A stretch of DNA of 64,000 nucleotides from the NCBI GenBank assembly GCA_028023455.1, contig JAQFVV010000005.1, positions 18,042,001 to 18,106,000 on the forward strand, given 5' to 3'. The notes beneath the pieces were generated by a model. The model ran no database searches and had not been told where the DNA came from. It saw nothing but the letters and a program-made list of their open reading frames with translations. Positions 12,621 to 58,098 of the stretch are shown one piece after another (the stretch's first letter is position 1; every line of letters starts with the position of its first letter). Source of the stretch: Epiperipatus broadwayi (taxonomy: Eukaryota > Animalia > Onychophora). The position numbers were made by a program, and so were the translations under genes.

Positions 12621-13198
12621 CCTGTCATTCAATTATTTTGATTCTGATATTTGGTTATTATTGCAATTCTATTATAATAATAAAAACAACTAAGAATTGA
12701 AATATGAATTAATATCAATATTATAAATGAGGGTTTTTTTTTGTATAGCTTATTATGCACAGTTTTGAATAAATATTTTTTTTTATTTATATAGGATATG
12801 GAAATTTTGAAATCTTTAATCAGGAGTTTATCAAAAATTAAAGTTTAGAGTTGCAGGATTAGTCACAGGAAGACAGTCACTCATCCATCTTAACATATAA
12901 ATGAAAATTATCCTTAAATATTAATCTTATATGAATTTCTATATCATAAAACAACTATAACATCATAAAAATCATTCAATATATAAAAAAAACTTCTAAA
13001 ACTGAATCTTTAAATATTGGAATAAATGATCTGCCAAATTTAGCCTAATATTATATAATCACTCTACTAGTTCTTGAGCTTCAGTAATGGAGTTTTTAAA
13101 TTAAACTGGCAAATCTTTACTCAGTGCAATCCAGAGTAATCAATGGATGTTAGAAGGCTTGTGCATAAAATCCATAACTAGTGCCTACTCACCCAATA

Positions 13199-13240
13199 TC
13201 CCCAGACTAGTTTCTAGCTTGTGGCTTTCATCAGTGAGGA
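13199..13240 (-). ncRNA. Minimal type I hammerhead ribozyme motif (family A)
   Basis: Reverse complement reads TCCTCA CTGATGA AAGC CACAA GCTA GAAA CTAGTC TGGGGA. Confidence 0.78.
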
Positions 13241-13282
13241 ACTTGGATCTGAGACCAAGTGCAGTGCTCTCAGATCCAAGGC

Positions 13283-13324
13283 TCCTCACTGATGAAAGCC
13301 ACAAGCTAGAAACTAGTCTGGGGA
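13283..13324 (+). ncRNA. Minimal type I hammerhead ribozyme motif (family A)
   Basis: TCCTCA CTGATGA AAGC CACAA GCTA GAAA CTAGTC TGGGGA: stem I TCCTCA/TGGGGA, stem II AGC/GCT, palindromic stem III ACTAGT, predicted GUC cleavage after 13318. Confidence 0.8.
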
Positions 13325-14214
13325 TATTGGGTGAGTAGGCACTAGATAGGGATTTTATGCACAAGTCTTCTGACATCCATTGATTACTCTGGCTTGCACT
13401 GAGTGGCACTACTGTATGGAGAGTTTTGCCTGTTTCAATAAGTTATAAGCAAGCATAAGAAATGGTGATCATGTGATGTTTAGTAGAGTTTTTAAATTAG
13501 TGCAAAAATTCCAGCTAGTGTTAAGATAAATATGCAAAGACATCTTGATTATTTTTTCACTTTTTTTATTTTCATCAATCTACTCTAATTAGAAGGTTGA
13601 GTTATTTGGTCTTGCTATTTGTGTGAAATAGACTGTTTCAAGTCAATATTAAAAATTCTCCTGCTAAGCAAGTGATAATGTTAAAAATTTGCCTGGTTAT
13701 TTAAAAACCAATCTTTCGACTAAAACAGTGTGATTGTAAAATTTTATACTCAAATATAGGTGTTTCAAACTGTACTGATTTTATATTTTATTCAATCGTA
13801 TTGATTGAAGTAATTAGAGCACAGAGGTTCATTAAATAAAGATTTGTTTTCACTTTGAATATCCAAAAATCAAATCAGAAACCCTTTGGGTTACAACCAG
13901 CCACTCTTACCATGTCCTAACAACTCAGATCATTCCAATCATGAGGTATTAAAAACTGGACGTAATTATTAAGTTAGTTTTTTGGAAGGTTGGATGAAGT
14001 TTAAGCACTGCAAGCACAAGTTGAACTTTAATACAAGAACACTCACAAGGCAAAAATCCAATAAATATTAGCTTGGAAAGTCACATGACAGTAAAGTTCA
14101 AGAAATAAAAAATTAAGCTTTGTTGAGTTGCTTTTTAATACCTTCAGCTAAAAAAAATAGTTGGATAACCATTTACTGACCAATATTGGATGGTCCTTTG
14201 GGTTGCCCAAGGCT

Positions 14215-14330
14215 AATTATCTGAAAAAAATTAAATCTATAAAAAAAATTTCAAGTTTACTCAGACCAATTCAAACCCAGATTTTAGGATAGATAGGCGA
14301 ACACCCTACTATTGCTCTTGTATTAAAGCC
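14215..14330 (-). mobile_element. Old tRNA-like SINE relic (similar relics at ~31500-31575 and ~58345-58400)
   Basis: Reverse complement reads AGTAGGGTGTTCGCCT...TCTGGGTTTGAATTGG then TCTGAGTAAACTTGAAATTTTTT; the aaaatttcaagttt.ct.a...agatt..aa motif recurs at the other two sites. Confidence 0.45.
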
Positions 14331-19900: not shown

Positions 19901-20141
19901 CCAAAATCACACTTTTCTTTATGTTTGCCGTAATATCATATAAATACAATTTATCCAAACTTCAAACACTTTTTAGCAAACTTTATTTGTACATACACCT
20001 ATGTTTCAACTGACCTGCAGTCTTCTTCAGAGTAAGATTATTCTGATCTTACTCTGAAGAAGACTGCAGATCAGTCGAAACATAGGTGTATGTACAAATA
20101 AAGTTTGCTAAAAAGTGTTTGAAGTTTGGATAAATTGTATT
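19901..20141. mobile_element. Family D fold-back plus tail insertion with HHR-like motifs
   Basis: 13-bp TSD TATTCCAAATACA at 19888-19900 and 20142-20154; ~99-bp arms 19940-20038 and 20046-20144 with 2 mismatches; ~40-nt tail at 19901-19939. Confidence 0.88.
20049..20095 (+). ncRNA. Hammerhead-like motif (family D); mirror copy on the minus strand at ~19990-20035
   Basis: TTACT CTGAAGA A GACTG CAGAT CAGTC GAAA CATA GGTG TATGTA: intact core and a 5-bp stem II; stem I is weak (ACT/GGT). Confidence 0.6.
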
Positions 20142-20439
20142 TATTCCAAATACATTCAATTGTTAAATAATAGCATACCGCTTATTACTTACAGTTGAAT
20201 GTATTTGGAATATTTAAATAAAGTTAAATTTTTCTAAAACATTCAATACTTATATTAGATGATGGAAATAGTCCAATATATAAATACAATTTGCTTGATG
20301 TGATGCATTGTGGCTTCTCCTTTATTGAAGTTAGGAATTTTTCAGCCACAATGCCCAGAGAAATATGGTAGCCACCTTACCTTCCCCTTCTATTTGCCAC
20401 CCTAAGTTTTTCCCATATTGTTTGCTATCCTAATCCATC

Positions 20440-21130: not shown

Positions 21131-23752
21131 ATTTAACTAATATTTTATGCAAATTAGTATTTGATGATGATAAGTTGATACAATCAAAATGCATTGGTAA
21201 TGAAAAATATTAAGTATTAAATTTTCTTTATTTTGCTTCATAATTAGTAATTATTTCCCTCTTTCTTTTTAATATCTCCTTGATGCAGCAACAAGTTTTT
21301 AAATCACAAAATATATATAATCTATATTCAACTAAATTTTCTGAGTATTCATACAGAAAAGATAGCCTTTATAATTTAAACGTAGTTTTTACTAATGCTT
21401 AGCTAAAAATCGATTCTCAATAAACAGAAAAGACACAAACATCTGCCTCTCGAAGAAGTGGACTTTTAAATGGATTTGAATACTTTTGAATATTAAAATA
21501 ACAAATTTAAATGTTGTTAAATATTAAAATATTTAACAAATATACTTAAAAGCTTGGAATAGTAAAGAAGTAATAATGCTATGATTATGCACACATGCTA
21601 TTTTATATAACGAAATCATGCTAAGCATAAATAAAAGCGAAGTTTAAATTATAAAGGCTACTTTTTCTATATGAATGCCATGAGCATTTAGTTGAATAAT
21701 ACAATTATCCAGAAAATAGGGGGGTCATTGGTTTATATAGTCTACAATATTTTCCAAACATATAAGCCACCCTTCTCCCCTTAGCTTTGAAAAAAAAATC
21801 TTTTCAAAATAAGACTTACTTAATTTAATTCTTAATAAATAATAAATTAAAGAAGAACTTTCAATCTTAGAGTGTATTATGTAATTCAAATAAATTATTA
21901 AATATTTACAGTTAAACGAAAATTTATTGAGATTAAACATTCTTACACAATATACTATTAATATCATTATTATATAATTATTTCTGTGGATATGATATAA
22001 AAAAAACCCCATAATTTTATTAAGTATCAAAAAATACTTTAGTAAAAAATTGTTACATAATATTGTTTATGTTGCCACTAAAGACTCTCCTGCGCAGAAG
22101 GTTTAAATGCAGATCAAATAAAATACTTTTTAGGAGGCTTAGGGTTTTTATTTCAGTTATTTGGCCCATAACCACTTCAGCTATGTATTTAAAATTTGTT
22201 TTAAAAAAAGGATATCCAACTATTCTTAATCAGAGAGCAAAACAAGGATGAATAGTCCCTCAAAATCTAACCATCTGGAATTTGCAAAAACTGTGAGTGC
22301 TACCTTCTTCTTGCTATTCTAAAAGGCAATGTTGGAAAGAACTTTGCCCTGGAATGGCCTACTTATATATAAAAGTAACTATTTATATAAAACATAGTAA
22401 CTAGAATTGATAAAAATGTAAGAAAATATAACTGTGAAATAGCTGGAAAGTTATAGAAAAGAATGAAAGTCTCAAAAATATATAATATCATTTTATTACA
22501 GGAAGTCATTTCAATAGAAAAGAAAATAATAAAAAGTATATTTTGTTATGTTGACACTGGCAGATGAGATCTTGCTAGAGATATTTTTTCCCTTTACTAT
22601 TGGCTATCAGATAAGATAAAAGAAAGAGAAAAGTCCTAGCTATGTCTGTGAATAAATCCAGTGGCCTGTGTGATTTAGCTGACCTGAGTAATGATAAATA
22701 CATTTTGTTCAGTTAACTAAATGCAATTATTGCTGTGCTTGGTTAAAGGCAATAGTAGGGTGATGAACTCTGGAGCTCAATATCAATGGAATGCATTGTC
22801 AGCTCCATCATTTCCAGTGTTCAAACCATTCAATTACTTTTATTGACACCACTGTGTTCAAATTGTCAAGTGAATGCTTAAATTTCATATGACCTCCTTA
22901 GATAGTAATCGTAAAATTATTACAATAATGGCATATCTGGAATGTTGCTTTTGTGCTGTATTAAAAAAGTGATGACATAATAAATAAATAACCCAGTCAC
23001 TAAACAAAAGTTTATTTCTAATAATACATAGTATTGCACTTTCTCCTAGATAGCAATATCATAGGAGAATGATAATTAAAAACAATCCTTTCATTATTTT
23101 CTTTTAATGTTACCGAGAACTTTACATTATAGTTCAATCATACACAAGAGAGTGGAAGGGGTGACCTCTGAGTGAATTTTTTTATTCATAGAGAAATAAT
23201 TATGAAGATCTATCATCCTTCATGGGAATGTTTGAATGGATGAATAAATAAATAGGCAAATAGATAGATGTATATAGTTAAGTATAGATGGATAGACATC
23301 TAGACTGTCAAGTAAATAGAAATAGGTAGATAATCATCTTTATTGCCCAAATAAACATATACCTAATTCATCTAGTAGTTGGTGTTATTACTCTGTTATG
23401 TAATTATCAATGGACTAATATGACTGTGATCTCTGTTGATAAAACCATGATCTGAAAGGTTATAGAAAAAGTAATTAAAAATGTATAAAGAATTAAGGGT
23501 GATTGTGAAATTTATCCACAGTAGGTAGCTTTACTGGTAGTTGCTTTTGTACCATTTTTTTATCCAGACATCTACTTGTTGGAGAATTAACAAGATTAAG
23601 TTCATGTTTAAAAACTATGTAAGAGAAACTAGATTACATGATCACCATCTCATATTAGCACATAGTAGTGCCACCCTGTGCCAACCAGAGTAAGCAATGG
23701 ATGCCAGAAGGCTTGTGCATAAAATCCATATCTAGTGCCTACTCATCCAATA

Positions 23753-23794
23753 TCCCCAGACTGGTTTCTGGCTTGTGGCCATCATCAGTGAGAA
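23753..23794 (-). ncRNA. Minimal type I hammerhead motif (family A)
   Basis: Reverse complement reads TTCTCA CTGATGA TGGC CACAA GCCA GAAA CCAGTC TGGGGA. Confidence 0.75.
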
Positions 23795-23909
23795 GCCTTG
23801 GATCTGAGAGCACTGCACCTAGATCTTAGGATCCTAAGATCTAGGTGCAGTGCTCTCAGATCCAAGGCTCCTCACTAAGATCTAGGTGCAGAGCTCTCAG
23901 ATCCAAGGC

Positions 23910-23951
23910 TCTTCACTGATGATGGCCACAAGCCAGAAACCAGTCTGGGGA
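23910..23951 (+). ncRNA. Minimal type I hammerhead motif (family A)
   Basis: TCTTCA CTGATGA TGGC CACAA GCCA GAAA CCAGTC TGGGGA; 4-bp stem II TGGC/GCCA; predicted cleavage after 23945. Confidence 0.78.
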
Positions 23952-26900
23952 TATTGGATGAGTAGGCATTAGATAGGGATTTTATGCACAAGCCTTCTGG
24001 CATCCACTGATTACTCTGGTTGGCACAGGGTAGCACTACTGTATGGGGAGTTTTGCCTTTGTTTAGAAACTAGATTACCTGATAAAATCATATTGAAATC
24101 TGAGAAATTTATTCTGCTTTCACATCAGTAAATGCAATATAGCATATAACAGCATAAATTTCATATTTTATTATATTTTGTAATTAAAAACTAATGATCT
24201 TATACCTAAGAAATCTTTTATTCAATATATTACATATTTTTTTAATTTATAAAAAATAATTGAATGATTTATATTGAGAGTTTGCAAAAGTTTAAGCACC
24301 AGAAGGAACAGAGCAGTCTTGATACCTGGACGTTGCCACTCTACCCCTGAATTAAATTATATAAGACATGTATTGTTATGAAAAATTGAATTTGGTTCAA
24401 AAATGAGTCCACAGAATTTATTGTGGACTCATCTTATGTTTACCCTCAATAATGTATTTATTCAAACTATAAAACCCTCCAGATCAGATTGAGAATACAA
24501 TATGGCTGATCAATAAAATGGCAATAAGGTAAACAAACAGTTTAATAATGCAGATAAATCAATCGATTAACTAAGTTATTATTATATTTGATTAAGACTG
24601 TGTAACACTAAGATATAAAAAAACAATAAACTTGCAAGAATATATACATATAAAATTAGTCAGCATAAAAGACATTAAAGTATCACTCTAGAAATAATTA
24701 ATATGCATAATAAGTGAAATTATGCAAATATTACAATATCATAGATATACTAATTTGCAAGAAAAAATAATGAAAATATTTATGCTAATTAGATCATATT
24801 AAATAAAACTATCGAGGGCAATAGAAAAAGAATAGCCAGAGGGAAGTACAGTGCATAATTATGAAGAGGGCAAAATAGTAAGAAGCTGAAGAATAGTACT
24901 GCAATAAGAAAAAATGCAGCACTATAGTTCAACACTATAAAGAATTGTGTGTGCATGATTGAGACCGATTTAATTTATGAAATTCAACTAGCAAATCATT
25001 AGTTGAAATAGTAGCAATTTACTAATATTATATATTCTAAGAAATAAACTTGTTGTTAAGTTCAAATTTTTTTTGCGTATTATTTTAAAATAATTTAATA
25101 ACTGTACAGATGGGTCAAATCTAACCACTGTATATGTCAGTTGATGCAGTCAACAGTTTAAAACTTGTAAGTATCAATTAGCATAATCATATAAATTTGT
25201 ATAATAAGTGCTTGACATTAGCATAATTTTATAAATTTGTATAATAAGTGCTTGACAATGATGACATACAACATAATAATGCAAAACAGTATGATAACCT
25301 CATTTAACTAAAATAACCCAGTGCAATGACAGATGTAGATTAATCATGTCAAATGATACATGATAATAAATAATATTCTGGTTAATAAACTAAAAGTTGC
25401 TACTCTTATATAGATGTTGTGGAAGGATGTGCTTCAAATAACTAACTGTCTGGACCTGAAAATGCCAGAAGATATAAAAATTTAATCTATATTTCAAACC
25501 AACAATTTCAAAATATATAGAAAGATTTTATTCCAAAATATAATGCAGTTACCAAATGAAAAGATATGAGATTATTATATTCTACAGTGAGAATTAACAA
25601 AAGGATGCTAGTTTAAAGACCACTTAAAAAATATGCTTCTAGACCAGCTATTATGGGGCATGTGAGATGTAAAACTTAGACAAGTATCACCAAGTGAGTC
25701 TATACTAACTTATACTGCCACCATTAAAAGATAAATAGCTTACAAAACAATTCTAGAACATGTGAAAGAATTTTAAGATATAGCAGATGAAATTAAAACA
25801 ATCACATATATAAACAGGGCAAAGACAGATGGCTGAGAAGAATACTTAACAGGATGTTTGTATTAGCTATTGTTATGGAGGAAAAGGCCACATAAAGGAA
25901 ATAAGTAAATTTTAGAAAAGTATAATAATTACAAAATGATATGTCATTTGTTGAAAGTTTATAAAAACAGATAGAAAATGACTGTCAGATTTACTTGCCA
26001 ATAGTAGTAAAGTGAGGGTAGGAGTATTGAAGAATGAATGTTTAAAAAAAAAGGAAAGTGAGAATATGTATAATATAATAGATGTCAAAAGTTACAATCA
26101 AATTATCAAAATGGAAGGCATATCACTTACCACTTCAAAGGATTATTTAGCCATTACTTAAGAAATGGGTTAATATTCAAATAAAAAAAAAACAAATTTG
26201 GTGCTACAAGTGTAAATAGGAATCCTATTTATATAAAAGAAATATTGATAGTACCAGTAAAAGTAAACAGACAGATAAAAAATTCACTGTTATATATAGT
26301 ATTTAAGAATCTGAGCTCTATATTGTGATGTAACTGGTTCCAATCTCTGGGAATAATATTGAACATATCAAGAGGGCCAAACTGAAATGTAAATTCCAGA
26401 AGAAATTTCAATATTATGTAAATCAAGTTTAAAGAAACTGAATAGTAAAATTGTAGCAGAAAGATCAAAAAATGATGTAGGATGTCAATTAGTTATTGTG
26501 AATGAAGCAAGGCTGGCTGAAAGTATGATCAAACTATGTAATGCCACAAATTTAGAATGCTCTAAAAAGTTTATGTATAGACAATAAACTCTTATAGACT
26601 GATTGAGTTTTAGTTCCAAATGAGGAGAGAAAATGTGTGCTACAGTTGTGATATATAATGAATACCCTGTAATAATTCCTATGAAACAAATATCTTGTTC
26701 TTATGACTAATGGCTGAACATGAATAATGATATTGAAAAAACTGTAAAGAAAACCATGACCTGAAGCTACAAAAACATAGAAAAGAGTTCATTTAGATCA
26801 TGCAGAGACAATCTCTGGATATATATTTTGGATAGTTATCAATCCATTCTCCAAATGGATGGAATACAGAATGATCAAAAATACCAATGCAGATAATATA

Positions 26901-27036: not shown

Positions 27037-27440
27037 AGAGGCAAAACTTTTCACACAGTAGTGCCACTCAGTGCAAGCCAGAGTAATCAATGGATGCAGG
27101 AAGGTTTGTGCATAAAATCCCTATCTAGTGCCTTCTTATCCAATATCACCAGACTAGTTTCTAGCTTTGTGGCCTTCATCAGTGAGGAGCCTTGGATCTG
27201 AGATCTCTGCACTGAGACCTTAGGATCTAATGCAACTCTCCAGCAGCCACCTTTTACTTTTTTTTAGCTAACTATAATGCTTTGAGTCCAAAATGAAAAC
27301 ACAATAATGTTTTCAAACTAAGCTCATTAGCTTGTATAGTTATATAGATCTGAACTGAGTAGCACTACTGTATGGAAAATTTTGCCTCTGTGAAAAACAG
27401 TTTGTGTAAGCATAAAGAATGGTGATCATGTAATGCTAGA
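27037..27440. mobile_element. Family A HHR element inserted into the integrase ORF
   Basis: 10-bp TSD TTAACATCAC at 27027-27036 and 27441-27450; long inverted arm carrying the HHR, plus a short sense arm and tail. Confidence 0.95.
27146..27188 (-). ncRNA. Minimal type I hammerhead motif (family A)
   Basis: Reverse complement reads TCCTCA CTGATGA AGGC CACAAA GCTA GAAA CTAGTC TGGTGA. Confidence 0.72.
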
Positions 27441-41870: not shown

Positions 41871-43046
41871 CCTTACATATATATATACGTAAACGTTTAT
41901 ATTATATTACCAATTTCTAACTATAAAATCTTTCCATTGACTCGTTGTAAATCGAAAGATTTCATGAGTAATAAGAAATGTGGACTTAATTAGTGAAGTA
42001 TTGAATAGATTCACGCTCTCAGATCGAACCGCTTCAGCTTCACCAAATTTAAATAGAAAGTAGGTTGAAGTAAAGAAGGGTTCCCCTCTTTTCTTCCAAA
42101 GAGTAAGCTTGTGGTTTAAGACCTGTAGAGGTTCCTACTATCGCATTTTTATACGCATGTGCTTGAGGCTACAGCCTTAATAAATATTACTTACGTAATC
42201 AATGTGCGTTTAAATAAATTTATAATTACCAATGTAGTATAAGAGAACAACATTGTAAAATGAAAAGATATAATTTAAATGTATTTATTATCAATAAATA
42301 GTTCGAACCACTTAAAAATTCCTGAACAATAAACCATTTGATTATTTCTTAATTTAATAGTAACCATCTGTAAAAATATTTTGAAAGATATTTTTTGGAT
42401 TTAAAGTTCGAATGTTCACTTCTGAAGATAACTTGAAAAAACTGTTGAGATTGATTAAGTATAAAAGGAAAATAATAAGTAAAATATTAAACTGCATTTA
42501 TATGATAATAGTAAATCAACTGCCTTGCATAGATAGGTGCAGTTCTGGACTCTGAAGCTTAATATCAGTGAATAGTAAACCAGTTCGGTCACTTTTGACT
42601 ATATAAAAAGTTCCTTCAAAACATACCTTTTAGAAACTATCAAATCATTTTTTTCTCTAAAGGATAAACGATAACCATGAAACATGTTTACACAATATGG
42701 AATCATAGTGAAAATATTTTTCTGACTTTCTGACTTTGGATGTATATTTATAACTATTACAAAAAAAAAATCCTTGTTAAATTCTGTTTAAAGTTTACAT
42801 GTAATCTTATCACATACCTTGCACATGTCTACAACAACCACATACCTAGCTTTAATAGCTATATAAATAAATACTAGTTATATCTCAAAAAATGTATGAG
42901 TTAAACAACCATGACATCTCAATTGAATAATAGATTTACTTCAAGTCTAAATAGTTTATCATTATATGATTCAAAGCCAATAAACATCACATGACCACCA
43001 CCTCTTATGCTTGTGTATAACTGTGCAGTGCTCTAAGATCCAAGGC

Positions 43047-43088
43047 TCCTCACTGACGAAGGCCATAAGCCAGAAACTAGTCTGGGGA
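43047..43088 (+). ncRNA. Minimal type I hammerhead motif (family A)
   Basis: TCCTCA CTGACGA AGGC CATAA GCCA GAAA CTAGTC TGGGGA; predicted cleavage after 43082. Confidence 0.8.
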
Positions 43089-43501
43089 TATTGGATGAGT
43101 AGGCACTATATAGGAATTTTATGCACAAGCCTTCTGTCATCCATTGATTACTCTAGCTTACTGTGTGTGGCAATATATATAGTGAGTTTTGCCTGTTTTA
43201 ACAACAGTTATACACAAGCATAAGAGGTGGTGGTCATGTAATGTTTATTGGCTTAAAACCAATCCTGCCTAATAGGATAGTGGTGGCTATGGTTATTAAA
43301 GAACCAAATACCCTGAAATATATGGGTACTAAACTGGGTTCAGATCCATATGACTATATAAGCTAATGGGCTTGGATTGAAAACATTAAGATGTTTTCAG
43401 TTTAAGACTCATAGTTTTGTAGTTAAATGGAGATAAAAGGTGTTTGCTGGAGGGTTGCATTAGATCCTGAGATCTATGTGCAGTGCTCTCGGATCCAAGG
43501 C

Positions 43502-43543
43502 TCCTTACTGACGAAGGCCATAAGCCAGAAACTAGTCTGGGGA
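43502..43543 (+). ncRNA. Minimal type I hammerhead motif (family A)
   Basis: TCCTTA CTGACGA AGGC CATAA GCCA GAAA CTAGTC TGGGGA; predicted cleavage after 43537. Confidence 0.8.
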
Positions 43544-44712
43544 TATTGGATGAGTAGGCACTAGATAGAGATTTTATGCACAAACCTTCTGGCATCCATT
43601 GATTTATTCTAGCTTGCTGTGTGTGGCAATATATATATAGTGAGTTTTGCCTGTTTTAATTATATGATTCACATATATTTATATCATAGTTTTAAATTTT
43701 ATGAAAATAAAAAGTGATTATATTTCATAGTACATTAAAAAAGCATGACAAACCAATTCAAAACTAGATCACCATATTCCTTGCCTTAATATATTTATAT
43801 AAATAATCTGCAGAATGATTTCTGTACTATATATATATATATAATTATAATTGAAATAATTGAAGTACTTCTGCGGATTTAAAGATTGTTTGTAATTGTT
43901 TGTAAACCGTTAAAAATATTATTTCAATTATAATTACAATATTGTTTTTAATTACGGATATTTTATTTATTTTACATATATATATATCAATGAAATTTGA
44001 CTGTAACTCCAATTGATAGATTGGTGATAAACATACCAAATGCTTTATCAGTTAGCATAGCAAAAGCTTATCAGTTAATAAGTCTGTTGCTGATATGTCT
44101 GCCTACCCTCAGTAATATTTCGTTTGTGAGTACATACACTTACCACATGTTATTTGAACCTGGGATACTTATCATTCTTTTTGGACTGGTACAGTTAATC
44201 AAAACCTCTTCAGGTTCTACCTCATTACATTTCTGAGGAATGTCCAGAAATCCAGATTTGAATCCTTGATTTTTAAGTGTTTAACAATCCCATTCAACAT
44301 CTTGTGACATGCTAGACTCAAACATGAAATTGCACAAATTAATTAATCAATCTAAATCATTTATTCCATTCAGGCATTCAATATAAGGTTTATATTATGT
44401 AACTGACTGAACAATTTTTTTAATAAAAAATATAATGCCATCGAGCAGGCATTCAATATAAGGTTTATAATATTGTGTTTCATCTCCCAATAATTTAAAT
44501 TAGATTAGAAATATCACCCCACCCCCCATGCTTGATCAATGACTTTACTATGGGCATTTTAAAATAATAAAAATAATTCTCATCAAACAATATACATTCA
44601 ATATTACAATTCATTCAAATAAAAATCTGCAATCGTTTTTTAAAAAAATAATATAAGGGATACCAAAAAATTTCCAGAATTTTATAATAAAAATTGTTTT
44701 TTTTTTTTTTTT

Positions 44713-44796: not shown

Positions 44797-44904
44797 TTGT
44801 TTATTTTTAGGTATTATAAATTTAATCGCTTTCAAATTATTGTTCATTTAATGCAATATACCAGTCTAAACATGTTTTTCACTTTTGAAAGTAATCCAGA
44901 AATA

Positions 44905-44953
44905 AACGTTACATGCTGTGTGTGGCAATAGATATAGTAAGTTTTCCCTGTTT
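44905..44953. mobile_element. 49-bp family A micro-insertion
   Basis: 13-bp TSD TAATCCAGAAATA at 44892-44904 and 44954-44966; AACGTTACAT (inverted tail piece) plus an arm end matching the 43.2 and 43.6 kb variant. Confidence 0.8.
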
Positions 44954-46293
44954 TAATCCAGAAATACTTGCAAAGTGATGCCTTTTAATGCCTGCCTTGT
45001 TTTTTTTTTTTTTTGTCAATACTTCTTAGTCTGCAAAAAAAAAAAAAAAAGAGAGAGAGATAGACATTTTTTCATTCATGAGAATACAAAAAAAATTTGC
45101 ATAAAGTGAGATTGAATGAAGATGGCTGATAGATAAGCTGGGTTATGCTGAATTTAATTAAAAATTGTTTTACACTCAAATCTTTATGATATAACACTTT
45201 TTTATGGTGAAGATTTCACTCCTCACTTTGCACACAAAACCGGATATTTATATTTTACCATATCATGGACACACTTCAGAACTTGTACATAAAATGCATG
45301 ACCATTACAAATTAATTCTGAAAAAAAAAAAGATATTTGCTTTTTAAAAAAAATCACCATTGTTTGGATATTGGACTTCATTCATGACACTTTTTAAAAT
45401 TTTTGTGAATTTAACACTTCTATTAAACCACTTATAAAGTTATGTTTTTTCTGATATCAGCTTGTTTATAAATATTACAACTGATTTCCCTGCTCTTTAG
45501 CCTAAAAGAAAATGGAATTTCACATTATTCCAACTTTTCAATCATTACAAAAATGAGCAAATATGCAAAAGTACTTACAAAAAAAAAAGCCATGTGGCAT
45601 CATGATTTCACATGGTAACACCATTTGGAGGATTGATGCAGAAGGGTCTCTGTAAGAAATATGTAGCAGCAGAAGAATATATCACAACAGGTGTTAATAC
45701 CAGAGAATTATTCCAGTTATTTTTGGTTCCTGTCTCATACAGTATAATAATAATCATCATCATAATTTAAAAAATATTGAATTTATAATTTAAGGCCTTA
45801 CAATTATACCATCGATAACATTTTAAAACCATCTTGCTAATTTTCTTTTTTTATAAAAGTTGCTTATGATTGCATTTCTTGGCAGCCTGATGTTCGCACT
45901 TTCTTATATTTTTATATGCAATCCTAGAATAATTTATATTGATCACTTAGTTTACCTGGCTTCAGATTTTCAATCAAAATTTCTGAGTAAGTTACTGTCA
46001 GTAGGTTTCTTCCATTTTTACAATCATCAGTATATATATATATATATGCTTTTTAAGGCTGGTAATTAACAGTAAAATGAATACTTTCTCCACTTATTAT
46101 TTCAGGCTGGTCAGCACTGATATCTTCCTTTTTCCTTCACATCAACTCATAAGTTGGCTATTGTCACTTTGCATAATTTCAGAATGCCTCCACAATTGTC
46201 AGACAAATCTCTGGGCAAGGACAAATGTATCTTTGATGACAATGAACATTAATTCATTGTTCTTTTCATATTAGGATTGGACTTTATAATTTT

Positions 46294-47370: not shown

Positions 47371-48782
47371 TATGAAGCTTTATAAAAAAAAAAAATAAAG
47401 AAAAAAAATGATACTAAAATTATAAGTAAACAGTTTGATTAAAAGATTATTTAAAGGATTAAAAAAAGATAGCTACACATAAAAAATATTTATGATAATG
47501 AATTAGGAAAAAAGTCTTTGAAAAGCAATAATATATCAAACAAAGAATAAAAGCTTTCTTTCACAGAATTTTCTATGTTCAACATTGGACCATAAACAGT
47601 GATAAAATGGATATATGTGGTTAAAGTGTAAAACAACTACAGTAAATTCTCAATCCATTGTTTTTCAAAGGATCAAAAGAATAGACAATAGATACATAAA
47701 AATGATAGAATTTTACATGTAATCTCAATAAATATTGACTGATCCCTTAGTGCTACTTGCACAAATCTTTAAATATCTAGCTTATAAAAATCAATCTCTG
47801 CATCGTCAATAATATCATAAGTACTTCTGAATACTCATGATATTACTGGTAATAAGAAAAAGTACCTTTTTCTGGATGTTAAATTTTAGTTTTGAGATAC
47901 ACTAGTGCTGTTGAAGATGTAACATTAAGTGGATTCATATTTTTTATATTTGATTTTCATTATAGCATTATGCTTTGGTTTAATGTATATAATTTTAATA
48001 TCATAGTAGGGGCATATTTAAAAATCACTGTTAATATGGTGATTACATAATGTTTTTTTTTATAGATCTCATTCCTCTAGTCACTACTGAATTTCTATTT
48101 TTATGTATTTAAAATTTGTCTTTATTTCAAAATTGCAGGAAAACTGTAGATTACACATGCGTGAGTTACATCACTCTTTTCTTATTCTTTTTTGTTATCT
48201 TTCCCATGGTATACATTATGTTTTTCTATGATAAAATTTAACGTTTTTATGAATTTTTATTTAATTACAGAACTTTATTTACCCCCCCCCCCTTTGGTTT
48301 ATTACATTATATGAAGAAAAAAACTGTATTCATTTTTTAGATGGAAAAAATAGATTGGTGACACAGATTCAAACATGAATGATTCTTTTTAATTTTATGG
48401 CTCTTGGATTTTGATAATATTTTGTCACTTAGCAGTTCCAAAATTTACTTTTGGAAGATAAACTAATTCCTTTAGCAATGAAAAAACAAAAAACGCATAT
48501 TCAATGTGTACTTACAGAAACTAGGGACACACCAGATTCTTCCTCTAATAACATCTGAACACAATGTAAAAATGGGTGGTCTTTTTACAATGTTTGCAGA
48601 CCTGAAGAAGTTTTTCATTACACGCGAGTCCTAGATTTTATAATTTTTTTTTTTTTTTTTGTGATACAACTATTAGTGAAAGTAATAAATATGTTAATAA
48701 AAAAGTTTTAAAAATGATGATTTGAAAAAATGCATCAAGTCATAAATTGTTTATTTTTGCTACAATATGATAGTGACCTGGG

Positions 48783-48822
48783 CCAACTGATGAGTGCTGG
48801 TTCAGCACGAAATGCATCTTGG
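48783..48822 (+). ncRNA. Canonical minimal type I hammerhead ribozyme (family B)
   Basis: CCAA CTGATGA GTGCTG GTT CAGCAC GAAA TGCAT C TTGG: full consensus core, G10.1-C11.1, 6-bp stem II, palindromic stem III ATGCAT, stem I CCAA/TTGG, predicted AUC cleavage after 48818. Confidence 0.9.
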
Positions 48823-49189
48823 GGATCATTTGTCTTTTATTATATCTTTATTTATATGAATTTGGAATGAATGGGAAAGTGTGGATGTGTTTATTATATC
48901 TCTAAAGATATTACATACAGGGCAGAGAAAGGTGAATAACACTGCGTGTGTAAATTTTAAAAAATCAGATATATTAATCTTTAACTGAGGTTTAAAGTTT
49001 ATATCTGTGCTAGAGATAATTTCTAGTTTTGAAAGTGATTAGTAATAATCATTAGTGTATTTATCTGAAATGGACGGCATCAAAGTTATGTGGAGGAAGT
49101 TTTGACAATGGTAAATGAAAATATAACAATTTACTCTAGATAAATACTTTGCATATAATAAAGATATATATGAGAGATAGTGACTTGGG

Positions 49190-49229: not shown

Positions 49230-51247
49230 GGGTCATTTGTCTTTTATTATATCTTTATTTATATGAATTTGGAAAGATTTGGGGAAGTGTGGAGGTGTTT
49301 ATTATATCTTTAAAATAATTAATATAGATGTAAATTAATTAGTAAATGGGATCACCTTTATATGGAAGTTAAATTCAAAGCATAGGTGTATTGATGTGCA
49401 GCAACCAATCAGACATGGCTCTGCTTGCTAAATGAAAACAATAGTAAAACTATATATATAATTCCTTGTAAGGTACATGCAGTTCAGCTGAGGAATATTT
49501 GGAATTCATATTCAAGGTATAAGTTTAAAGCAGCTTTATTGTAGAGATATAATGACCAACAGTAGGTTTCATGGTTTATTATCATACCTGCATTTCAGTG
49601 ATAATGAAAAAATGCTAGGTAATAATAATGTCAGGTAACAAAAATAAAGACTTTGATCAAATATACAAAATTAGGCCCAAATAAACTAATACAATACTAA
49701 ATTCAAAACTGCATATCAGATGAATAGAGAAATAGTAGTTCATTGAACAACCACTAAACATACTGGCAATAATACAATGTGACAATATGATCACTCAAAA
49801 CTAATAAAGTGAGGTTCAAATGATGGGTCTGTGCAGATAATTGTAACAGGTATGTATACCATATGGAGTTGCATATAAATAAAAATAAGTCTTATGCTAG
49901 CTAATATTTGAGCACTCAGAAGTTTACAACATTAAAAAATTGTGTTTTCTGCCAGAAAAAATAATATAAAAGGGTTTTGGCTGTGTGTAGTGATAATTGC
50001 ACAATAAAATTGTTCTGAGAGGCGGCTTTATTGCTTATCAACTAAAATTGAGCTAGTCAATGCATCTTAAAACACTCCCCCTAACTTCAGAAATGTGAAC
50101 TAATGCGCCAGCCCCATCCAACAACTTTCTGTATGAATAGTTCTATAGATTGTTACATCTGCATCTTTATTTTGCTGCATGATTATAGTAACGTCTTGTA
50201 AATAATCATTTCGTAGTATCTGAAAATATTTCTGTTTTTATAATTTTTATTTATGAATATTTATTATGACCGTTAATATTTTACGTTATTATTTCTTACT
50301 ATTACAATAGCTAAATTATATAATAAGTATATAGTGTGTGGGCATGTGAATGAATGCTTAAGTAATCAAATTACTTATGATTACATAAAATATTTTATTG
50401 ACTCACTAACTTGGAAATAATTTATCTTAGGTTATATTTTCCTTTTTTATTTCACTTAGTTTTAGTATTGGTTTTGTCTTATAAATGGTTTTTATCTGTT
50501 TTACATTTTGATCTCCGTTTTATTTTTACTTTTTTATTTTCTAACTAATAGTTTTTTCTCCCAGATGTCTGTCAAAGTTCATTCCATCAAAGGCATATAA
50601 TGAATGAACGTTTAATGTAGCAAGTCTCTTCAAAGATACAATATTGATTAGCTGTCTTTCCATTGTAGTCGCATAATAAACACACTGTGCTTAAATTACT
50701 TTTTTAAACATCTGTTCTTTAGACTCAATAACTAATCCATATACTTTAATGTTCTTTAGCATGAATCATAAACAACAGTAATACTTTAAAATAACACAAA
50801 TGGCATTATGAAGTTCAAATCAAAAAAAACAAAAACAAATTTAATGCAGATAGATAAAAACATCTTTACTGCCATCTAATGTCTATTAATAACTAAATTA
50901 ATGCATATATAATAGCTATGAACAAAAAAGCGATCATTATTATTTAATGTAGATAATTTAAGCTAATACAGTCAATGATACTTGGTTTGAAATATTCCAT
51001 GTTTACTATTAAAGCAGTCCACAGTTAGCTTTTATCTGAAGTCACTAATTATATATTAATGATTGTAAAAAATGACAAGTGAATATAAATTGTTTCATAG
51101 TCTACTCCCCTTTTCTATATATGAATATATTACATCAATATTTACCCCAATTTATTTTTTAATAAAAAAAAAGCTATTAGTAAATAGAACTCCTATATTT
51201 ATTTTGATCCAAATATTTCAGATCCAAATAACAATGCTTAACCTTTT

Positions 51248-51354
51248 AAACCACTAAACATCACATGATCACTATCTCATACTAGCACATAATTGTTATT
51301 AAACAAGGCAAAACTCTCTCCATACAGTAGTGCCACCCTGTGCCAATCAGAGTA
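51248..51354 (-). mobile_element. Family A 3' end fragment (tail plus arm end, no inverted arm)
   Basis: AAACCACTAAACATCACATGATCAC...GGCAAAACTCTCTCCATACAGTAGTGCCACCCTGTGCCAATCAGAGTA; no TSD seen. Confidence 0.85.
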
Positions 51355-52548
51355 GTTGTATGTATTTTTTTTTTTTTAGAATCTCTAGCAGCACTTTTTA
51401 TTTATTCAAATTTATCTTTATTTTTTATTATATTTTCAGAAATTTTGAATTATTTGTTAAAAGTATATAGTGTTTATTAATGAAAATTATTCTTACAAAT
51501 AATATTTCAACTTTGAAAATACAGAAAAATAATCATAATATAGATAGGAAGATTTATAATAACAATACAGTTACTGCATTGCTGGTAAAAATATTAAACT
51601 AAAAAAAATCAAAATTGTTTTAACTTAACTCATAAAGTCAGAATGAATTATCATTCAGATTATGTAAACCTATCAAAATTCTATACATGATTTTAAAAAA
51701 ATTACAAAAAAAAAAAATCCGATGTAATCATTATAAAAGGATTCTTTTTCAACCAATCACAAATTGAGGTCATAATTATTTACTTTTTGAAAAAAATCTG
51801 AATTTAATCACATTATTCTTCAGAGAAAATAAAATATTCCACAAATATTTTGTGAAAAATAATCATAAATATGTTTATTAAAAATATAAAAAATACATTT
51901 TCATTTTTGGAAACTTTAAAAGAATGACTATGTTCCAAAGCTCTATAAGACACTCTTACATGAAGAGAACTAGAAATAACCAATCAGCGACATTGTAGGT
52001 TGGTTGTTGACTTACTTGTAAAACATTTCTCAGTACAATACTGACATCTTGTTAAATGAATGCAAAACTGGAAAAATAGTGCTAAAGACAGCCACTAAAA
52101 ATTGATTTAAAGTCAAAGCAAAACAGCTTCATTACAAAGACCAATATTATCACACATAACTTAATATTTCCTATCATTCATTCCCAAATTCCTATTCTAA
52201 TTGTGCTAAGTAACAGTATATGTAGATATCTTTTTTGACTATATGAATAATTGGCTTTAGACTTTTCATTTTCAGATGTCATTTTCTTTTTAATCCAACA
52301 ATTTGGAAATTTTAACTATTGCTTTTAAAAAAATAATATTAAGAGATCCTGCTTTGGCACATATGGACATCTATAGAGTTACTTGGAGTCTGGTTTCATT
52401 GCTAGCACTATTATAATTATGATATTTGCATTATGAATTCTAAAATGTTATTAAACAAAGAGCTTTGCTAATTGCTTAACAAGCATTGTGATAAATGCTT
52501 AGCTAGAGAAAGCATTTAAAATATCTCTATCAGAAAACCACACCTAAA

Positions 52549-52590
52549 CCCTTGACCAATGGTTTCATGCTTTGGCACTCCTCAGAGAGG
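52549..52590 (-). ncRNA. Type I hammerhead motif (family C)
   Basis: Reverse complement reads CCTCT CTGAGGA GTGC CAAA GCAT GAAA CC ATT GG TC AAGGG; stem III ACC/GGT, GUC cleavage triplet. Confidence 0.72.
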
Positions 52591-52897
52591 CGCTAGGGTA
52601 TTTCCAGAACCTAGATCTAAAAATACCAACCCAAAGCCAGCATATATCTAAGAGTTAACTATTGAGTAAAAAAATCTGAAATTTTCAGCACTTAAATATC
52701 TTCAAACCCAGCTATCTAACTCAAATAGCTATAGTTTGGCTGAAGATGTCTCAACCCCATATAACTATTTGAGTTAAATAGCTGGGTTTTAAGACATTTA
52801 AGTGAATAAAAATTTCAGATTTTTTACTCAATAGTTAACTCTTAGATAAATGCTGACTTTGTGTTGGTATTTTTAGATCTAAGATCTGAAACTACCT

Positions 52898-52938
52898 GCT
52901 CTCTGAGGAGTGCCAAAGCATGAAACCATTGGCAGGGG
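52898..52938 (+). ncRNA. Family C hammerhead motif lacking U16.1
   Basis: GCTCT CTGAGGA GTGC CAAA GCAT GAAA CCATTGG C AGGGG. Confidence 0.55.
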
Positions 52939-53975
52939 TTTGGGTGTGGTTTTATGATAGATATATTTTAAATGCTTTCTCTGGTTAAGCATTTATCACA
53001 AAGCTTGTTGAGCAATTAGCAAAGCACTTTGTTTATATTTTACAAGCTTAAAAAAATGGCATCATGTGATATATGACTATTTTTTATTTCTAAAATGTTT
53101 AATTTTTTTACCCATATATAATTATTGTTTTAGAAATTATTTAATTTTCAAAATCCATCTAATAATGATTATATTTCTCAAGAAAGTTATTTTATTTAAT
53201 TATGTAAATAATTAACCAATTATTAATCTAATCACTGTGTTTAATACAATATCAATAAAGTTTTTTTTTTTTTTTAAAGTACTGAATGTTATACTAATAA
53301 TTTATTTTCACTGCAGCACAGTTAGGTAGATAAGTTAACTTGGGTTCAATATTTTGAAGTCTTGAAACTTTGATTTAAATAATATAATACGTTTAAAGTG
53401 GCAATACATTCAAATAATTCATCATATCAGGATAAAAGTTAGTTGGACAGAAATCTGTCCTGTTTGTTATCTCCACTGATTACACAAATACCTCACAGTA
53501 ATAGCACATTAAAAATTGGATCCTTACAATTAGGTTAATAAGTGCCATTAAAGAAATTAGGCCTTCTTTCCTATAAATGCACATAGTAATATTATATATT
53601 AAAGGCACAATAATGTAATACTTGTAAACAATAATATGAAAGTAATTATAAACACACTATTCATTCTTAAAATATATATTTATTTATTTATAATAACACA
53701 AGTATAAATTCAATAATATATAAATATACTTTCAAGTATTAGTAGGTTTTCTATATATCTTGTAATTAAGTTACAATTCATTATGATGTTATCATAATTA
53801 TTAATTCTAAGAAGAAGAAAAAAAGATATAATTTTATTGATGAAGAATTCACAATTTTTCAGGAAAATTGTTTATTTTTACATTTAAAACAATTTTATTT
53901 TTCATTTATCTTAATTTAATAATAAGCTAAATTTGAAGTGTTTAAATACTCTAAATTATATAATATTACATTTTA

Positions 53976-54331: not shown

Positions 54332-54991
54332 TAATATTACATTTTAAAAAATTATAAAAATGTAAAGAATATAATATATTTTTATTATTTAAAGTAAAAT
54401 ATTCTATTAATTTTCCTGTATTTACAATCTCACAACTTCATAATTATTTACAATTCGAAAAATATAGGTTTACTCTGACCTGTAAGGTCAATTTGGTCCC
54501 TGAAATGCCTCGTGAATCAAAAATTTTATATAAGAACAAGAAATTATAATGATTTCCTATAGCAAAATTTTTTATTTACTATCCTAAATTCAAAATTTAC
54601 ATATATAAAAAAACCTGATAAAAAAAAGCTTAAAATTAAAAAAAAAAGTCATAATTAATGAATAAATACTTTATAAAATATATTATTAATTAAAAAAAAC
54701 CCATTAACCTGAGAGTAAATATACTATATAATAAAATATTTTAGTTGCTGTAATTTTTTTTTTTTTTTCAAACAAAACAATAATTTCACAATTTAAGGTG
54801 GGCATTTTGAGTATTATCTAATCACAATATATTAAATTAAAATAAAACAAATAGAAAAAAAGACACAACAAATTTATTTTATGTTCCATTATCAAAGTTT
54901 TTTTTTTTTTTTGTACTTATCTAACCAATAAAATTTGTTGTTTTTTTTGTTTGCAGCACTGTTATTTCTTATTAAAACAACATTTCATTAT

Positions 54992-55193
54992 CACCTGATC
55001 ACCATCTCTTATACTAGCACATTATTGTTATTAAACAAGGCAAAACTCTCCATACAATAGTGCTACCCTGTGCCAAACAGAGTAATCAATGGATGAGTAG
55101 GCACTAGATAGGGATTTTATGCACAAACTGGATCCATTGATTACTCTGTTTGGCACAGGGTGGCACTACTGTATGGAGAGTTTTGCCTTGTTT
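54992..55193. mobile_element. Family A short fold-back insertion (HHR core not included)
   Basis: 13-bp TSD AACATTTCATTAT at 54979-54991 and 55194-55206; arms ~55030-55094 and ~55132-55193; tail at the left end. Confidence 0.9.
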
Positions 55194-55714
55194 AACATTT
55201 CATTATATTATTTATTTTACATAAGCAGAACACTAATTCCAATAAAAATAAATACAATATACAATTGATTATTGTAGTTTTAATATTGCAAATGTATATA
55301 AATTTTTTTTTGCTGATATTGTTTTATGTAGAATTAAGATATTAAAATTCCTGTAAATATAAAAGCGTTAGAAATTAGTTAAATAAAAATTGTTTTTGAG
55401 GTAATGTATGTGACATGAATAAACTATGAGAATAGTGAGTAAAAATTAAACCAATAAGTGATCATTTCACTATACGTTTAATATCATTTAATCATATAAA
55501 TATTATTATTAGCTCTTCAACAGTTAATATTGCTTATGACAGGCTCTAGTGGCTGATTGTATTAAATTTCCAACTTTTTTATTTTATTAAATATATCTTT
55601 ATTCTTTATTATATTTTTATAAATTTTGAATTATATCTTAGAAATGTGAGTTTACAAATAAAAATTAATTTAAAAAAAATAATAGTTCAACTTTGTGCAA
55701 ATTTGCCAACAAAA

Positions 55715-55820: not shown

Positions 55821-56085
55821 TTAAATTAATTACAGTTAGATCTGCTTTCTGCCAATTACAAAATATAACTTTACATTATTGATTTCTTTTGAGTTGTCTT
55901 CTTCTAAAAATAAATATTTTTGAATAAAATCTAAATCTAATCGCATTATTCTTCTGCAATAAATAAATAATATATAAGTATTTGCAAAAATAAATATTCA
56001 AACAAATACAGAAAACATGTTTTCATTTTCAAAATATAAATAAAAGCATAAACACTCCCAAAATCTCTCACTAATGCTCTTGAGT

Positions 56086-56407
56086 TGAGAGAACAAAAAA
56101 CTACCAATCAGTTCATTTGTAATAGGTTTCTTGAGTGAACAAAAAACTACCAATCAGTTCATTTGTAATAAATTTCTTGAGAGAACAAAAAACTACCAAT
56201 CAGTTCATTTGTAATAGGTTTCTTGAGAGAACAAAAAACTACCAATCAGTTCATTTGTAATAGGTTTCTTGAGAGAACAAAAAACTATCAATCAGTTCAT
56301 TTGTAATAGGTTTCTTGAGAGAACAAAAACTACCAATCAGTTCATTGGTAATAAATTTCTTGAGAAAACAAAAAACTACCAATCAGTTCATTTGTAATAG
56401 GTTTCTT
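56086..56407. repeat. 46-bp minisatellite, ~7 units
   Basis: Unit CTACCAATCAGTTCATTTGTAATAGGTTTCTTGAGAGAACAAAAAA starts at 56101, 56147, 56193, 56239, 56285, 56330 and 56376. Confidence 0.95.
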
Positions 56408-57170
56408 CACACACATCATGAATTTTTTTTTTAGTTCTACTTTTTGTTATCAAATGAATGCTAAAGATAGCTGAATGCTAAAGATAGCCACAAGAGAATG
56501 AATTAAAGTTGTAGCAATCACAAAGTCTATTAGTGGCTCTGCAATTTTTCATTCAATACTTGAAAAGGATTAATTATATAATGCATAAAAAATTTCCATC
56601 CTTTTTCAATCCAAATAAATTTAGAATAACAGTATTCTTGTCTTCTCAAATTAATTGAATGAATTATTTTAGTTAATGTACATATTTTAAAACTTGTTAT
56701 TGTTATTGTATAGAATCAAAGTGCGTTTTTTTTATTATTTATTGTACTGAATAAAACTTGTAATTTTTTGATTTTAGCCATTTGCATTGAAAGTTTTATT
56801 CATTTTAGATGTGTCATAAATTAAATTACAAACTGTTAAGAATATTGAATGAAAATATGGTAATTATACTAATTATATCTTAACTGTATGCATTTTATAT
56901 ACATTTATGATATGAAGGTTAACTTCCAATGACATTTTCTTCATGAAATCATTAAAATTATGAAGTTTTATAGAGTGGTCACCATTAAAAATGTTTTGGA
57001 TATTTTTATTATTTTTTATTATGCAATTAGATAAAAAACATATAAATAAATATTTTTTAAAATTTAATTATAGTTAGTATTTATTAATAATTCATTATAT
57101 ATACTGTATATTAAAAATAATAATTATTTTATCTTTTTTTTGAAACTTTATAATATAAAAATAAATTGTT

Positions 57171-57280
57171 TTTCTTTTTTCATATGTCATAGCATCGACC
57201 AGGAGGTGAACCCGCAACAACCTTCCTCAACCAATGCTTGCAAGGTGGCTGCACTGACCTCTCGGCTAACAACGCTGGAC
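57171..57280 (-). mobile_element. tRNA-Gly-derived SINE (subfamily 1)
   Basis: Reverse complement reads GTCCAGCGTTGTTAGCCGAGAGGTCAG...GGGTTCACCTCCTGGTCGATGC TATGACATATG then an A-tail; similar to 9682-9793. Confidence 0.8.
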
Positions 57281-57617
57281 TAAAAATTGTTATTGATTAA
57301 AAATAGCAAATTTTCAAAACTTTTTATTTTTTTATATAAATGCTTTAAAATATTTTTTTGAGTTCCTTTTTAAATTTTGATATATATAATTTTAAAAATA
57401 TTACATAAATACATTTTCTTTAACAAAAGCATTAAAAAATTAAGTCTGAATATCTACTCTCAAAAATTCTTTTTCTCCTGCTTAAAAGATTAAATATTTT
57501 GAAACATCTGCTTTCTGATTTGTTTCTATTATTTTTAAATTTTTATTATTTTTTCTCATAACTAATACTTTTATTCCAGATTCATCATTATATTTATATA
57601 TTAAGTTAAAAATATTA

Positions 57618-58098
57618 AACAATTCAAAACAAAGCAAAACTCTCCATACAGTAGTGCCATCTTGTGCTAACAAGAGCAATCAATGGATGCCAGAAGGCTT
57701 GTGCATAAAATCCCTATCTAGAGCCTACTCATCCAATATCCCCAGACTAGTTTCTAGCTTGGGGCCTTCGTCAGTGAGGAGCCTTGGACCTGAGAGCACT
57801 GAACCTAGATCTGAGGATCTAATGCAACCCTCTAGCAGCCACCTTTTAACTCTACTTAACTACAAAACTATGAGAATTAAATTGAAAACACACTAATATT
57901 TTCAAGCCAAAAACTAGTCTGGGGATATTGGATGAGTAGGCACTAGATAGGGATTTTATGCACAAGCCTTCTGGCATCCATTGATTGCTCTTGTTGGTAC
58001 AAGATGGCACTAGTGTATGGAGAGTTTTGCTTTGTTTTGAATTGTTTAATAACAATTATATGCTAGTATGAGATAGTGATCATGTGATGTTTAGTGGT
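57618..58098. mobile_element. Family A HHR element, fold-back form
   Basis: 12-bp TSD TTAAAAATATTA at 57606-57617 and 58099-58110; arms share private variants; full tail at the right end. Confidence 0.92.
57739..57780 (-). ncRNA. Minimal type I hammerhead motif (family A)
   Basis: Reverse complement reads TCCTCA CTGACGA AGGC CCCAA GCTA GAAA CTAGTC TGGGGA. Confidence 0.78.

Follow-up and report, generated by a model that had tools for sequence, protein, structure and literature searches.

The window analysed here is a stretch of 64,000 nucleotides (nt) from the onychophoran Epiperipatus broadwayi (GenBank assembly GCA_028023455.1, contig JAQFVV010000005.1, positions 18,042,001 to 18,106,000 of the forward strand). 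It harbours a repeat, Family A, in the form of six insertions and two solo fragments, and five of the insertions together carry eight copies of a hammerhead ribozyme (HHR). Family A is probably a non-coding, high-copy passenger of Penelope-like elements (PLEs) in an AT-rich animal genome, resembling the retrozymes that lack long terminal repeats (non-LTR retrozymes) and bearing one type I HHR per unit. It is a fresh, species-specific example of a published class and not a new kind of ribozyme or element.

Hammerhead copies and their architecture

The pattern CTGAYGA-N(4-20)-GAAAC has ten matches in the window, where dinucleotide shuffles lead one to expect 0.17. Eight of the ten correspond to copies listed by a sequence-only reading of this DNA, which located them by the ends of their TCCTCA and TGGGGA blocks; pattern scan, reading of the sequence and an eight-copy alignment confirm all of them in place. 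Their CTGA starts lie at 13234 (-), 13289 (+), 23788 (-), 23916 (+), 27182 (-), 43053 (+), 43508 (+) and 57774 (-). A full structural descriptor, consisting of a 5-bp helix I, core, helix II, GAAA, helix III and UH, recovers seven of the eight in the window, and the copy at 27182 (-) is missed solely through a G-to-U change in helix I. The descriptor has 0 matches in 90 Mb of first-order Markov sequence of the window's composition, a chance rate of <1 per 90 Mb, and the ancestral motif is therefore no chance look-alike.

The alignment gives the block order UCCUCA-CUGAYGA-helix II-GAAA-CUAGUC-UGGGGA, and the conserved hammerhead core (C3 U4 G5 A6 N7 G8 A9, G12 A13 A14, A15.1-U16.1 and H17) is present in 8/8 copies. 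The 12 invariant core nucleotides are unchanged throughout, while N7 alone varies (U in five copies, C in three), in line with the invariant core and alternating position 7 described earlier. Helix I is open, with both the 5' and the 3' end leaving the motif through it, which corresponds to the type I layout. By sequence and architecture, the Family A motif is thus a type I hammerhead, an identification already made in the sequence-only reading and borne out by the invariant core, the three helices and the open helix I.

Helix II has three G/C-rich pairs in every copy and the loop CACAA. In the alignment its strands read AGC/GCU in two copies, GGC/GCC in four and GGC/GCU in two. The AGC/GCU form, with A-A at position 10.1/11.1, is found in the copies at 13191..13248 (-) and 13274..13332 (+), for which cleavage is predicted 3' of C17 at 13205 and 13318, respectively. 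The copies at 43038..43096 (+) and 43493..43551 (+) combine GGC/GCC with A-A at 10.1/11.1 and N7 = C, and have C17 at 43082 and 43537. A G-U pair (GGC/GCU) characterises the copy at 27138..27197 (-), which has a 6-nt loop 2, a G-to-U mismatch at helix I position 1.4 and C17 at 27152, as well as the copy at 57731..57789 (-), with N7 = C and C17 at 57745. The remaining two, at 23745..23803 (-; C17 at 23759) and 23901..23959 (+; C17 at 23945), extend helix II to UGGC/GCCA through U10.1-A11.1 and have ACCAGU as helix III. Position 10.1/11.1 is accordingly A-A in 6/8 copies, the majority that had been noted before, and U-A in 2/8. The palindrome ACUAGU, proposed as the usual stem III, likewise holds for 6/8 copies, with ACCAGU in the other 2/8.

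The earlier description of the ribozyme as minimal is only partly apt and understates the motif. Helix III is of the dimer type, and helix I comprises 6 bp, an internal loop with GGC opposite UA (5' and 3' strand, respectively) and a second 6-bp helix, AUCCAA/UUGGAU. Across the eight copies, pairing is kept in 97.9% of cells in the proximal part of helix I and in 100% in the distal part. Further evidence against a minimal form is provided by the copy at 23899-23968, containing U10.1-A11.1, which aligns end to end with the canonical Rfam model Hammerhead_HH9 at the sub-threshold score of 20.6 bits (gathering score 52; E = 0.0023 on 81 nt). Judged by this layout, the Family A ribozyme is a canonical type I hammerhead with a dimer-type helix III. 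It shares with Hammerhead_HH9 (RF02275, the canonical type I HHR of amniote introns) the order of distal helix I, internal loop and proximal 6-bp helix I, followed by CUGAUGA, a 4-bp helix II and GAAAC...GUC. Loop 2 (CCA-CAAG against CCAAAAAG) and the 3' internal loop (UAU against UAC) are similar as well. In contrast to that model, the closed hairpin of helix III is reduced in Family A, with 2 nt separating C15.2 from G16.2, the 10.1-11.1 pair is lacking in most copies, and the ribozyme is borne by a repeat rather than residing at a single conserved intronic locus.

In the monomer, helix III amounts to the single pair A15.1-U16.1 around the palindromic CUAG; a C15.2-G16.2 pair is impossible because the loop would then hold two nucleotides. 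In the dimer, helix III has 6 bp. As helix III cannot be closed in the monomer and is palindromic, cleavage as a dimer is the expected mode, by analogy with the newt, axolotl and Penelope HHRs that have been published as dimer-cleaving (PMC7229834, PMC4209133) and in agreement with modelling. The minimum-energy structure of the monomer (-19.0 kcal/mol) is a competing fold in which CUGA pairs with UAGU, and the hammerhead fold reaches just -10.8 kcal/mol. RNAcofold of two copies yields a minimum of -41.6 kcal/mol, predicted to be a double hammerhead with the 6-bp ACUAGU helix III, so that the proposed compatibility of the palindrome with a double-hammerhead dimer is upheld in silico. The single pair around a palindromic tetraloop is a likeness to HHR_Amex1 of newt and axolotl, with dimer function being the expectation for Family A. 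Similarly, the palindromic positions 15.2-16.2 and loop 3 are shared with the HHRs of PLEs and imply dimer use.

The 455-nt unit and its insertions

Used as a blastn query, the interval that separates the two ribozymes of 43023-43673 reveals the Family A copies and a tandem period of 455 nt. The complete unit, 43083..43537 (+), runs from cleavage site to cleavage site and has 38% G+C. The longest ATG-initiated open reading frame (ORF) in a dimer of the unit encodes 83 amino acids. Among the ten longest ORFs in the window none has a Pfam match, and this includes the Penelope reverse transcriptase and endonuclease. Folded as a circle, the unit is strongly self-paired (-138.8 kcal/mol, z = -4.7 relative to shuffles).

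All six insertions are flanked by exact target-site duplications (TSDs) of 10-14 bp. The arms of each insertion reach the 3' region of the unit and are cut short at differing 5' positions; five insertions are head-to-head and one is of a 1.4-mer type. The inverted arms are 94-96% complementary. A tail is present at exactly one outer end in 6/6 insertions. The short outer end terminates at ...GCCUGUUU, around unit position 118 (counted in nt after the cleavage site), and the tailed outer end continues for ~50 nt to ...GGUGAUCAUGUGAUGUUUAGU, each in 6/6 insertions.

Insertion 1 (13104..13485) consists of head-to-head arms that both extend back to unit position ~375, with the tail on the right (+) arm and the TSD GAGTTTTTAAATTA at 13090-13103 and 13486-13499. 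Insertion 2 (23638..24064) is likewise head-to-head; its left (-) arm carries the tail and an internal deletion, and its + arm contains a 45-nt internal tandem duplication (23830-23915) that ends at CCUCAC, directly 5' of the ribozyme core. Its TSD, AGAAACTAGATTAC, is located at 23624-23637 and 24065-24078. In insertion 3 (27037..27440; TSD TTAACATCAC at 27027-27036 and 27441-27450), the long - arm runs from unit position ~250 through 455 to ~112, where it has the short 3' end, and the tail is borne by a short + arm (unit ~81-170). Insertion 4 (42974..43658; TSD ATTATATGATTCA at 42961-42973 and 43659-43671) begins with an inverted arm that contains nothing but the tail (42974-43022). Next to this arm are 1.4 tandem + units with HHRs 455 nt apart, and the tandem segments differ by ~10%. 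Insertion 7 (54992..55193; TSD AACATTTCATTAT at 54979-54991 and 55194-55206) contains no HHR, both arms being cut 3' of the ribozyme, and the tail is on the left arm. Insertion 8 (57618..58098; TSD TTAAAAATATTA at 57606-57617 and 58099-58110) has a long - arm running from unit position ~289 to 455 and on to ~116, with the short 3' end, and a + arm that starts within helix II and bears the tail. Two solo fragments without an HHR complete the set, namely 44891..44956 (+; unit ~53-118) and 51244..51336 (-; unit ~84-175).

At the head-to-head junctions of insertions 7 (55086-55092, TGGATGA) and 8 (57904-57910, AAGCCA), 6-7 nt are common to both arms. This microhomology suggests that two cDNAs were joined there. 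Exactly at the short 3' end lies a small AC-rich hairpin, found at 43190-43226, 58015-58075, 54992-55050 (-) and 27395-27440. It takes the form CUGUU-loop-AACAG, with UUGUU/AACAA and AAUUGUU/AACAAUU in other copies; its predicted energies are weak and it is lost in one copy.

TSD-flanked inverted arms of 94-96% complementarity, over whose palindrome Rfam sees generic miRNA-like hairpins, could point to a DNA transposon of the foldback or miniature inverted-repeat transposable element (MITE) type with long terminal inverted repeats, in which case the hammerhead likeness would be coincidental. We regard this origin as extremely improbable. The outer ends are asymmetric, with the one-end tail in 6/6 insertions, the inner junctions fall at differing unit positions, the TSD length ranges from 10 to 14 bp, and one insertion is a direct 1.4-mer. 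In addition, the chance rate of the full descriptor, <1 in 90 Mb, argues against coincidence. The MITE or foldback candidate is hence rejected on its asymmetric ends, variable junctions and variable TSD length.

Most window copies are short 3'-terminal pieces, and PLE insertions are usually heavily 5'-truncated (PMC8557442). The copies could therefore be the truncated pseudo-LTR ends of an autonomous, protein-coding PLE, with no separate family involved. This is very unlikely, since the ribozymes of insertion 4 are 455 nt apart and leave no space for a reverse-transcriptase gene. Moreover, the longest arms, which reach unit positions 250 and 289, match the non-coding Family A unit, and the unit is devoid of any Pfam-recognisable ORF.

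Family A is very high-copy in the DNA of this organism. In a DNA run of the same organism (X1), 128,639 contig pieces fit a 412-nt Family A stretch, and RNA-labelled runs of two organisms, which may contain DNA, hold 2,134 and 3,566 pieces. At least part of the stretch is found under 13 organism labels. Contig depth, which when summed over words gives no copy number, is highest between helix II and a point ~60 nt beyond the cleavage site, in accordance with the 5' truncation of the copies. One contig of the RNA-labelled run X7 (organism B) equals the unit in length to the nucleotide (455 nt), which may be a coincidence or reflect an assembled unit-length RNA.

Constraint, covariation and catalytic competence

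Among the eight copies, 0/12 invariant core columns are variable compared with 18/58 other ungapped columns (Fisher p = 0.019). Standard pairs occupy 95.1% of the helix cells, a value that drops to 24-45% when the partners are slid. Six out of six single-sided helix transitions lead to wobble pairs, the single G-to-A change (10.2) is compensated by C-to-U at 11.2, and one transversion breaks a helix pair.

Variability beyond the window was assessed on contigs of four public runs that resemble the unit by >=80%, using the best-supported 40 of 111 variable places. Within these 40, the ribozyme contributes only 43506 in helix I, where the window copy is in the minority, 43512, which is N7, and 43521 in loop 2. 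At N7, T accounts for ~37-50% of word depth in the contigs of all four runs. From 43522 to 43566 there is no variable place among the best 40 of 111. These data are suggestive of, and compatible with, an invariant core and a free N7 genome-wide.

Several results weigh against Family A as a passenger whose ribozyme is active. 8/8 copies lack the G10.1-C11.1 pair at the base of helix II, a pair that known HHRs conserve strongly (PMC4209133), though not absolutely. The Rfam hammerhead models, one of which (Hammerhead_1) the sequence-only reading had named as a check, give no match at the gathering threshold: no copy in the whole window reaches any gathering score, and the two A-A copies searched have no hammerhead match even at E <= 10. 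The covariation of stem II put forward in the same reading holds up as kept pairing and not as covariation. The only pair changed on both sides is 10.2-11.2 (GC in four copies, GU in two, AU in two), and 90/500 shuffles reach the observed score, which is not significant. The eight related copies represent five independent lineages, one per insertion, because both arms of one insertion share variants. The test was held at eight copies because exact-pattern scans of metagenome and viral contig collections for further copies returned 0 matches. In the public contigs, the quiet stretch extends ~30 nt downstream of the ribozyme, and the constraint is therefore not specific to the catalytic core. 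Those contigs are assembler products, blind to C17 ends, to strand and to reliable circular junctions, and the RNA-labelled runs may contain DNA. With ~10% divergence between its tandem segments, insertion 4 is no less compatible with a linear multimer from a diverged array than with a circle. In the one PLE that has been examined in vitro, insertion does not depend on HHR cleavage, and no reads end at its HHR site (PMC11167929). Finally, no PLE gene lies in the window, and hence we infer the identity of the mobilising PLE, as we do self-cleavage, dimer use and circular RNA.

The main alternative among the rivals is an inherited HHR, descended from a PLE pseudo-LTR ribozyme, that is catalytically dead or strongly attenuated and does not self-cleave alone. 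It would have been kept for PLE protein binding or template folding, or merely because the family has amplified recently. We consider such a relic unlikely. The replacement of G10.1-C11.1 by A-A in 6/8 copies speaks for it, yet an active axolotl ribozyme bears a mismatch at the same place (PMC7229834). While the monomer favours a competing fold, the minimum-energy structure of the dimer is predicted to be the active double hammerhead. Conservation genome-wide runs ~30 nt beyond the ribozyme and the A-A copies lack an Rfam hammerhead match, whereas the core is invariant while N7 floats, and the helix changes were counted as pairing-compatible. The relic would also be in keeping with the poor in vitro cleavage of metazoan PLE HHRs (PMC4209133) and with the PAc HHR, which is protein-assisted and dispensable for insertion in vitro (PMC11167929).

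The precedent in axolotl, HHR_Amex2, cleaves despite a U-U mismatch at the base of helix II, and does so much better in the dimeric form (PMC7229834). By analogy, the A-A at 10.1/11.1 of Family A has an active precedent in this mismatch, and it appears to be the majority state of a family of roughly at least ten thousand copies. It is conceivable, albeit doubtful, that two opposed purines are tolerated at the base of helix II, beside the A9/G10.1 metal site, in a hammerhead that occurs naturally and is actively being amplified. If the A-A state is functional, the ribozyme might be adapted such that cleavage requires either a dimer or the assistance of a PLE protein. Family A offers a natural test case for the importance of the 10.1/11.1 pair.

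The window contains a second hammerhead family, Family B, at 48781-48824 (+), with the sequence GGCCAA-CUGAUGA-GUGCUG...CAGCAC-GAAA-UGCAUC. Its helix II has 6 bp and includes G10.1-C11.1, the canonical pair, and its palindrome is AUGCAU. The next Family B unit, near 49190 and 407 nt further on, reads CTGATAA and is probably dead, as its G8 is changed to A. Used as a control, the canonical-core Family B motif scores 16.4 bits against a Hammerhead_1 gathering score of 34 (E = 0.1). As this canonical motif is also sub-threshold, the Rfam models are insensitive to repeat-borne HHRs with a short or vestigial helix III, and standard Rfam scanning overlooks families of the Family A type.

The miRNA-like and hairpin Rfam matches obtained for two A-A copies at E <= 10 are far below gathering and were dismissed as artefacts of the palindrome. 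At 13209-13314, the palindrome formed by the two arms matches miRNA precursor models with up to 38 bits (gathering score 90), and the long hairpin is the sole basis of these matches. Read-through transcripts of head-to-head insertions would form double-stranded RNA.

Known relatives and other repeats in the window

PLE insertions are known to be strongly shortened at their 5' ends, to form partial tandems, to lie beside a truncated copy in inverted orientation and to carry a short tail, of 30-40 bp in published cases, at one end only (PMC8557442). In vitro, a PLE enzyme cleaves and extends both DNA strands, and reverse transcription starts at two adjacent internal sites, at an AC-rich stem-loop ~90 nt downstream of the ribozyme cut (PMC11167929). 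The anatomy of the Family A insertions corresponds to this published footprint, and Family A is therefore read as a PLE passenger.

In the proposed mechanism, two ribozymes of a multimeric transcript would pair via ACUAGU to form a double hammerhead, and cleavage 3' of C17 would set free a unit-length RNA, which may be ligated into a circle. A PLE reverse transcriptase/endonuclease acting in trans would then nick both strands of an AT-rich target. cDNA synthesis would begin at two internal sites, ~118 and ~170 nt downstream of the cleavage site, and the two cDNAs would be joined, sometimes at short microhomologies. The outcome would be head-to-head 5'-truncated arms with a ~50-nt tail at one end and a TSD of 10-14 bp.

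In comparison with PLEs and their pseudo-LTR HHRs (Cervera & de la Pena 2014, PMC4209133; Craig et al. 2021, PMC8557442; Frangieh et al. 2024, PMC11167929), Family A has the insertion footprint and AT-rich targets in common, and its ribozyme is likewise situated ~100 nt upstream of the region where reverse transcription starts. The AC-rich hairpin resembles the stem-loop at which the Anolis Penelope enzyme begins reverse transcription. In Family A the start regions lie ~118 and ~170 nt downstream, with the hairpin at the first, as opposed to ~90 nt (PMC11167929). Further differences are the absence of a reverse transcriptase/GIY-YIG gene and a tail of ~50 nt instead of 30-40. Compared with the "min-HHR" of PLEs, helix II is shorter (3-4 bp against 6-8), and helix I is long with an interruption. 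The single bulged base 5' of G10.1-C11.1 in PLE HHRs is missing as well; both strands carry A in Family A.

Metazoan non-LTR retrozymes have non-coding units 150-450 bp in length that bear type I HHRs, are low in G+C and are flanked by TSDs >4 bp (Cervera & de la Pena 2020, PMC7229834). Family A agrees with them in that its unit measures a few hundred nt, is non-coding and bears one type I HHR, and in its low G+C (38%), TSDs >4 bp (10-14) and highly self-paired predicted circle. The very high copy number is shared with the satellite-type ribozymes of newt and axolotl, and the mismatch at the base of helix II with HHR_Amex2, albeit as A-A instead of U-U. Its 455 nt place the unit at the upper limit of the range reported. 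In contrast to the non-LTR retrozymes, Family A occurs in the window as one short tandem (1.4 units) and otherwise as dispersed head-to-head fragments, and its circular RNA and cleavage are predicted only. The sequence is species-specific, with no match in the metagenome and viral contig collections scanned.

A 2026 preprint argues for metazoan retrozymes being non-autonomous derivatives of Penelope pseudo-LTRs, based on the co-occurrence of element types across species and on sequence and phylogenetic comparisons in Xenopus (bioRxiv 10.64898/2026.07.22.740005). The insertion anatomy of Family A supports the claim that animal retrozymes are non-autonomous Penelope derivatives. With a ribozyme of retrozyme-type architecture, canonical and predicted to be dimer-dependent, and a Penelope footprint in every insertion, Family A links two published classes of animal hammerhead elements.

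Further repeats are present in the window. A tandem array of 46-nt units at 56039-56466, giving at least 8 overlapping 107-nt matches, is unrelated to Family A. Collinear direct repeats at ~980-3630 and ~7940-9510, which are 82-92% identical and ~5.9-6.9 kb apart, look like a local segmental duplication. Inverted repeats are located at 19940-20144 (99-nt arms, 98% complementary, 7-nt spacer), at 1996-2549 (168-nt arms at 95%) and at 52452-53035, where nested inverted pairs surround 52.6-52.9 kb. These are probably other foldback, MITE-like or Penelope-style insertions.

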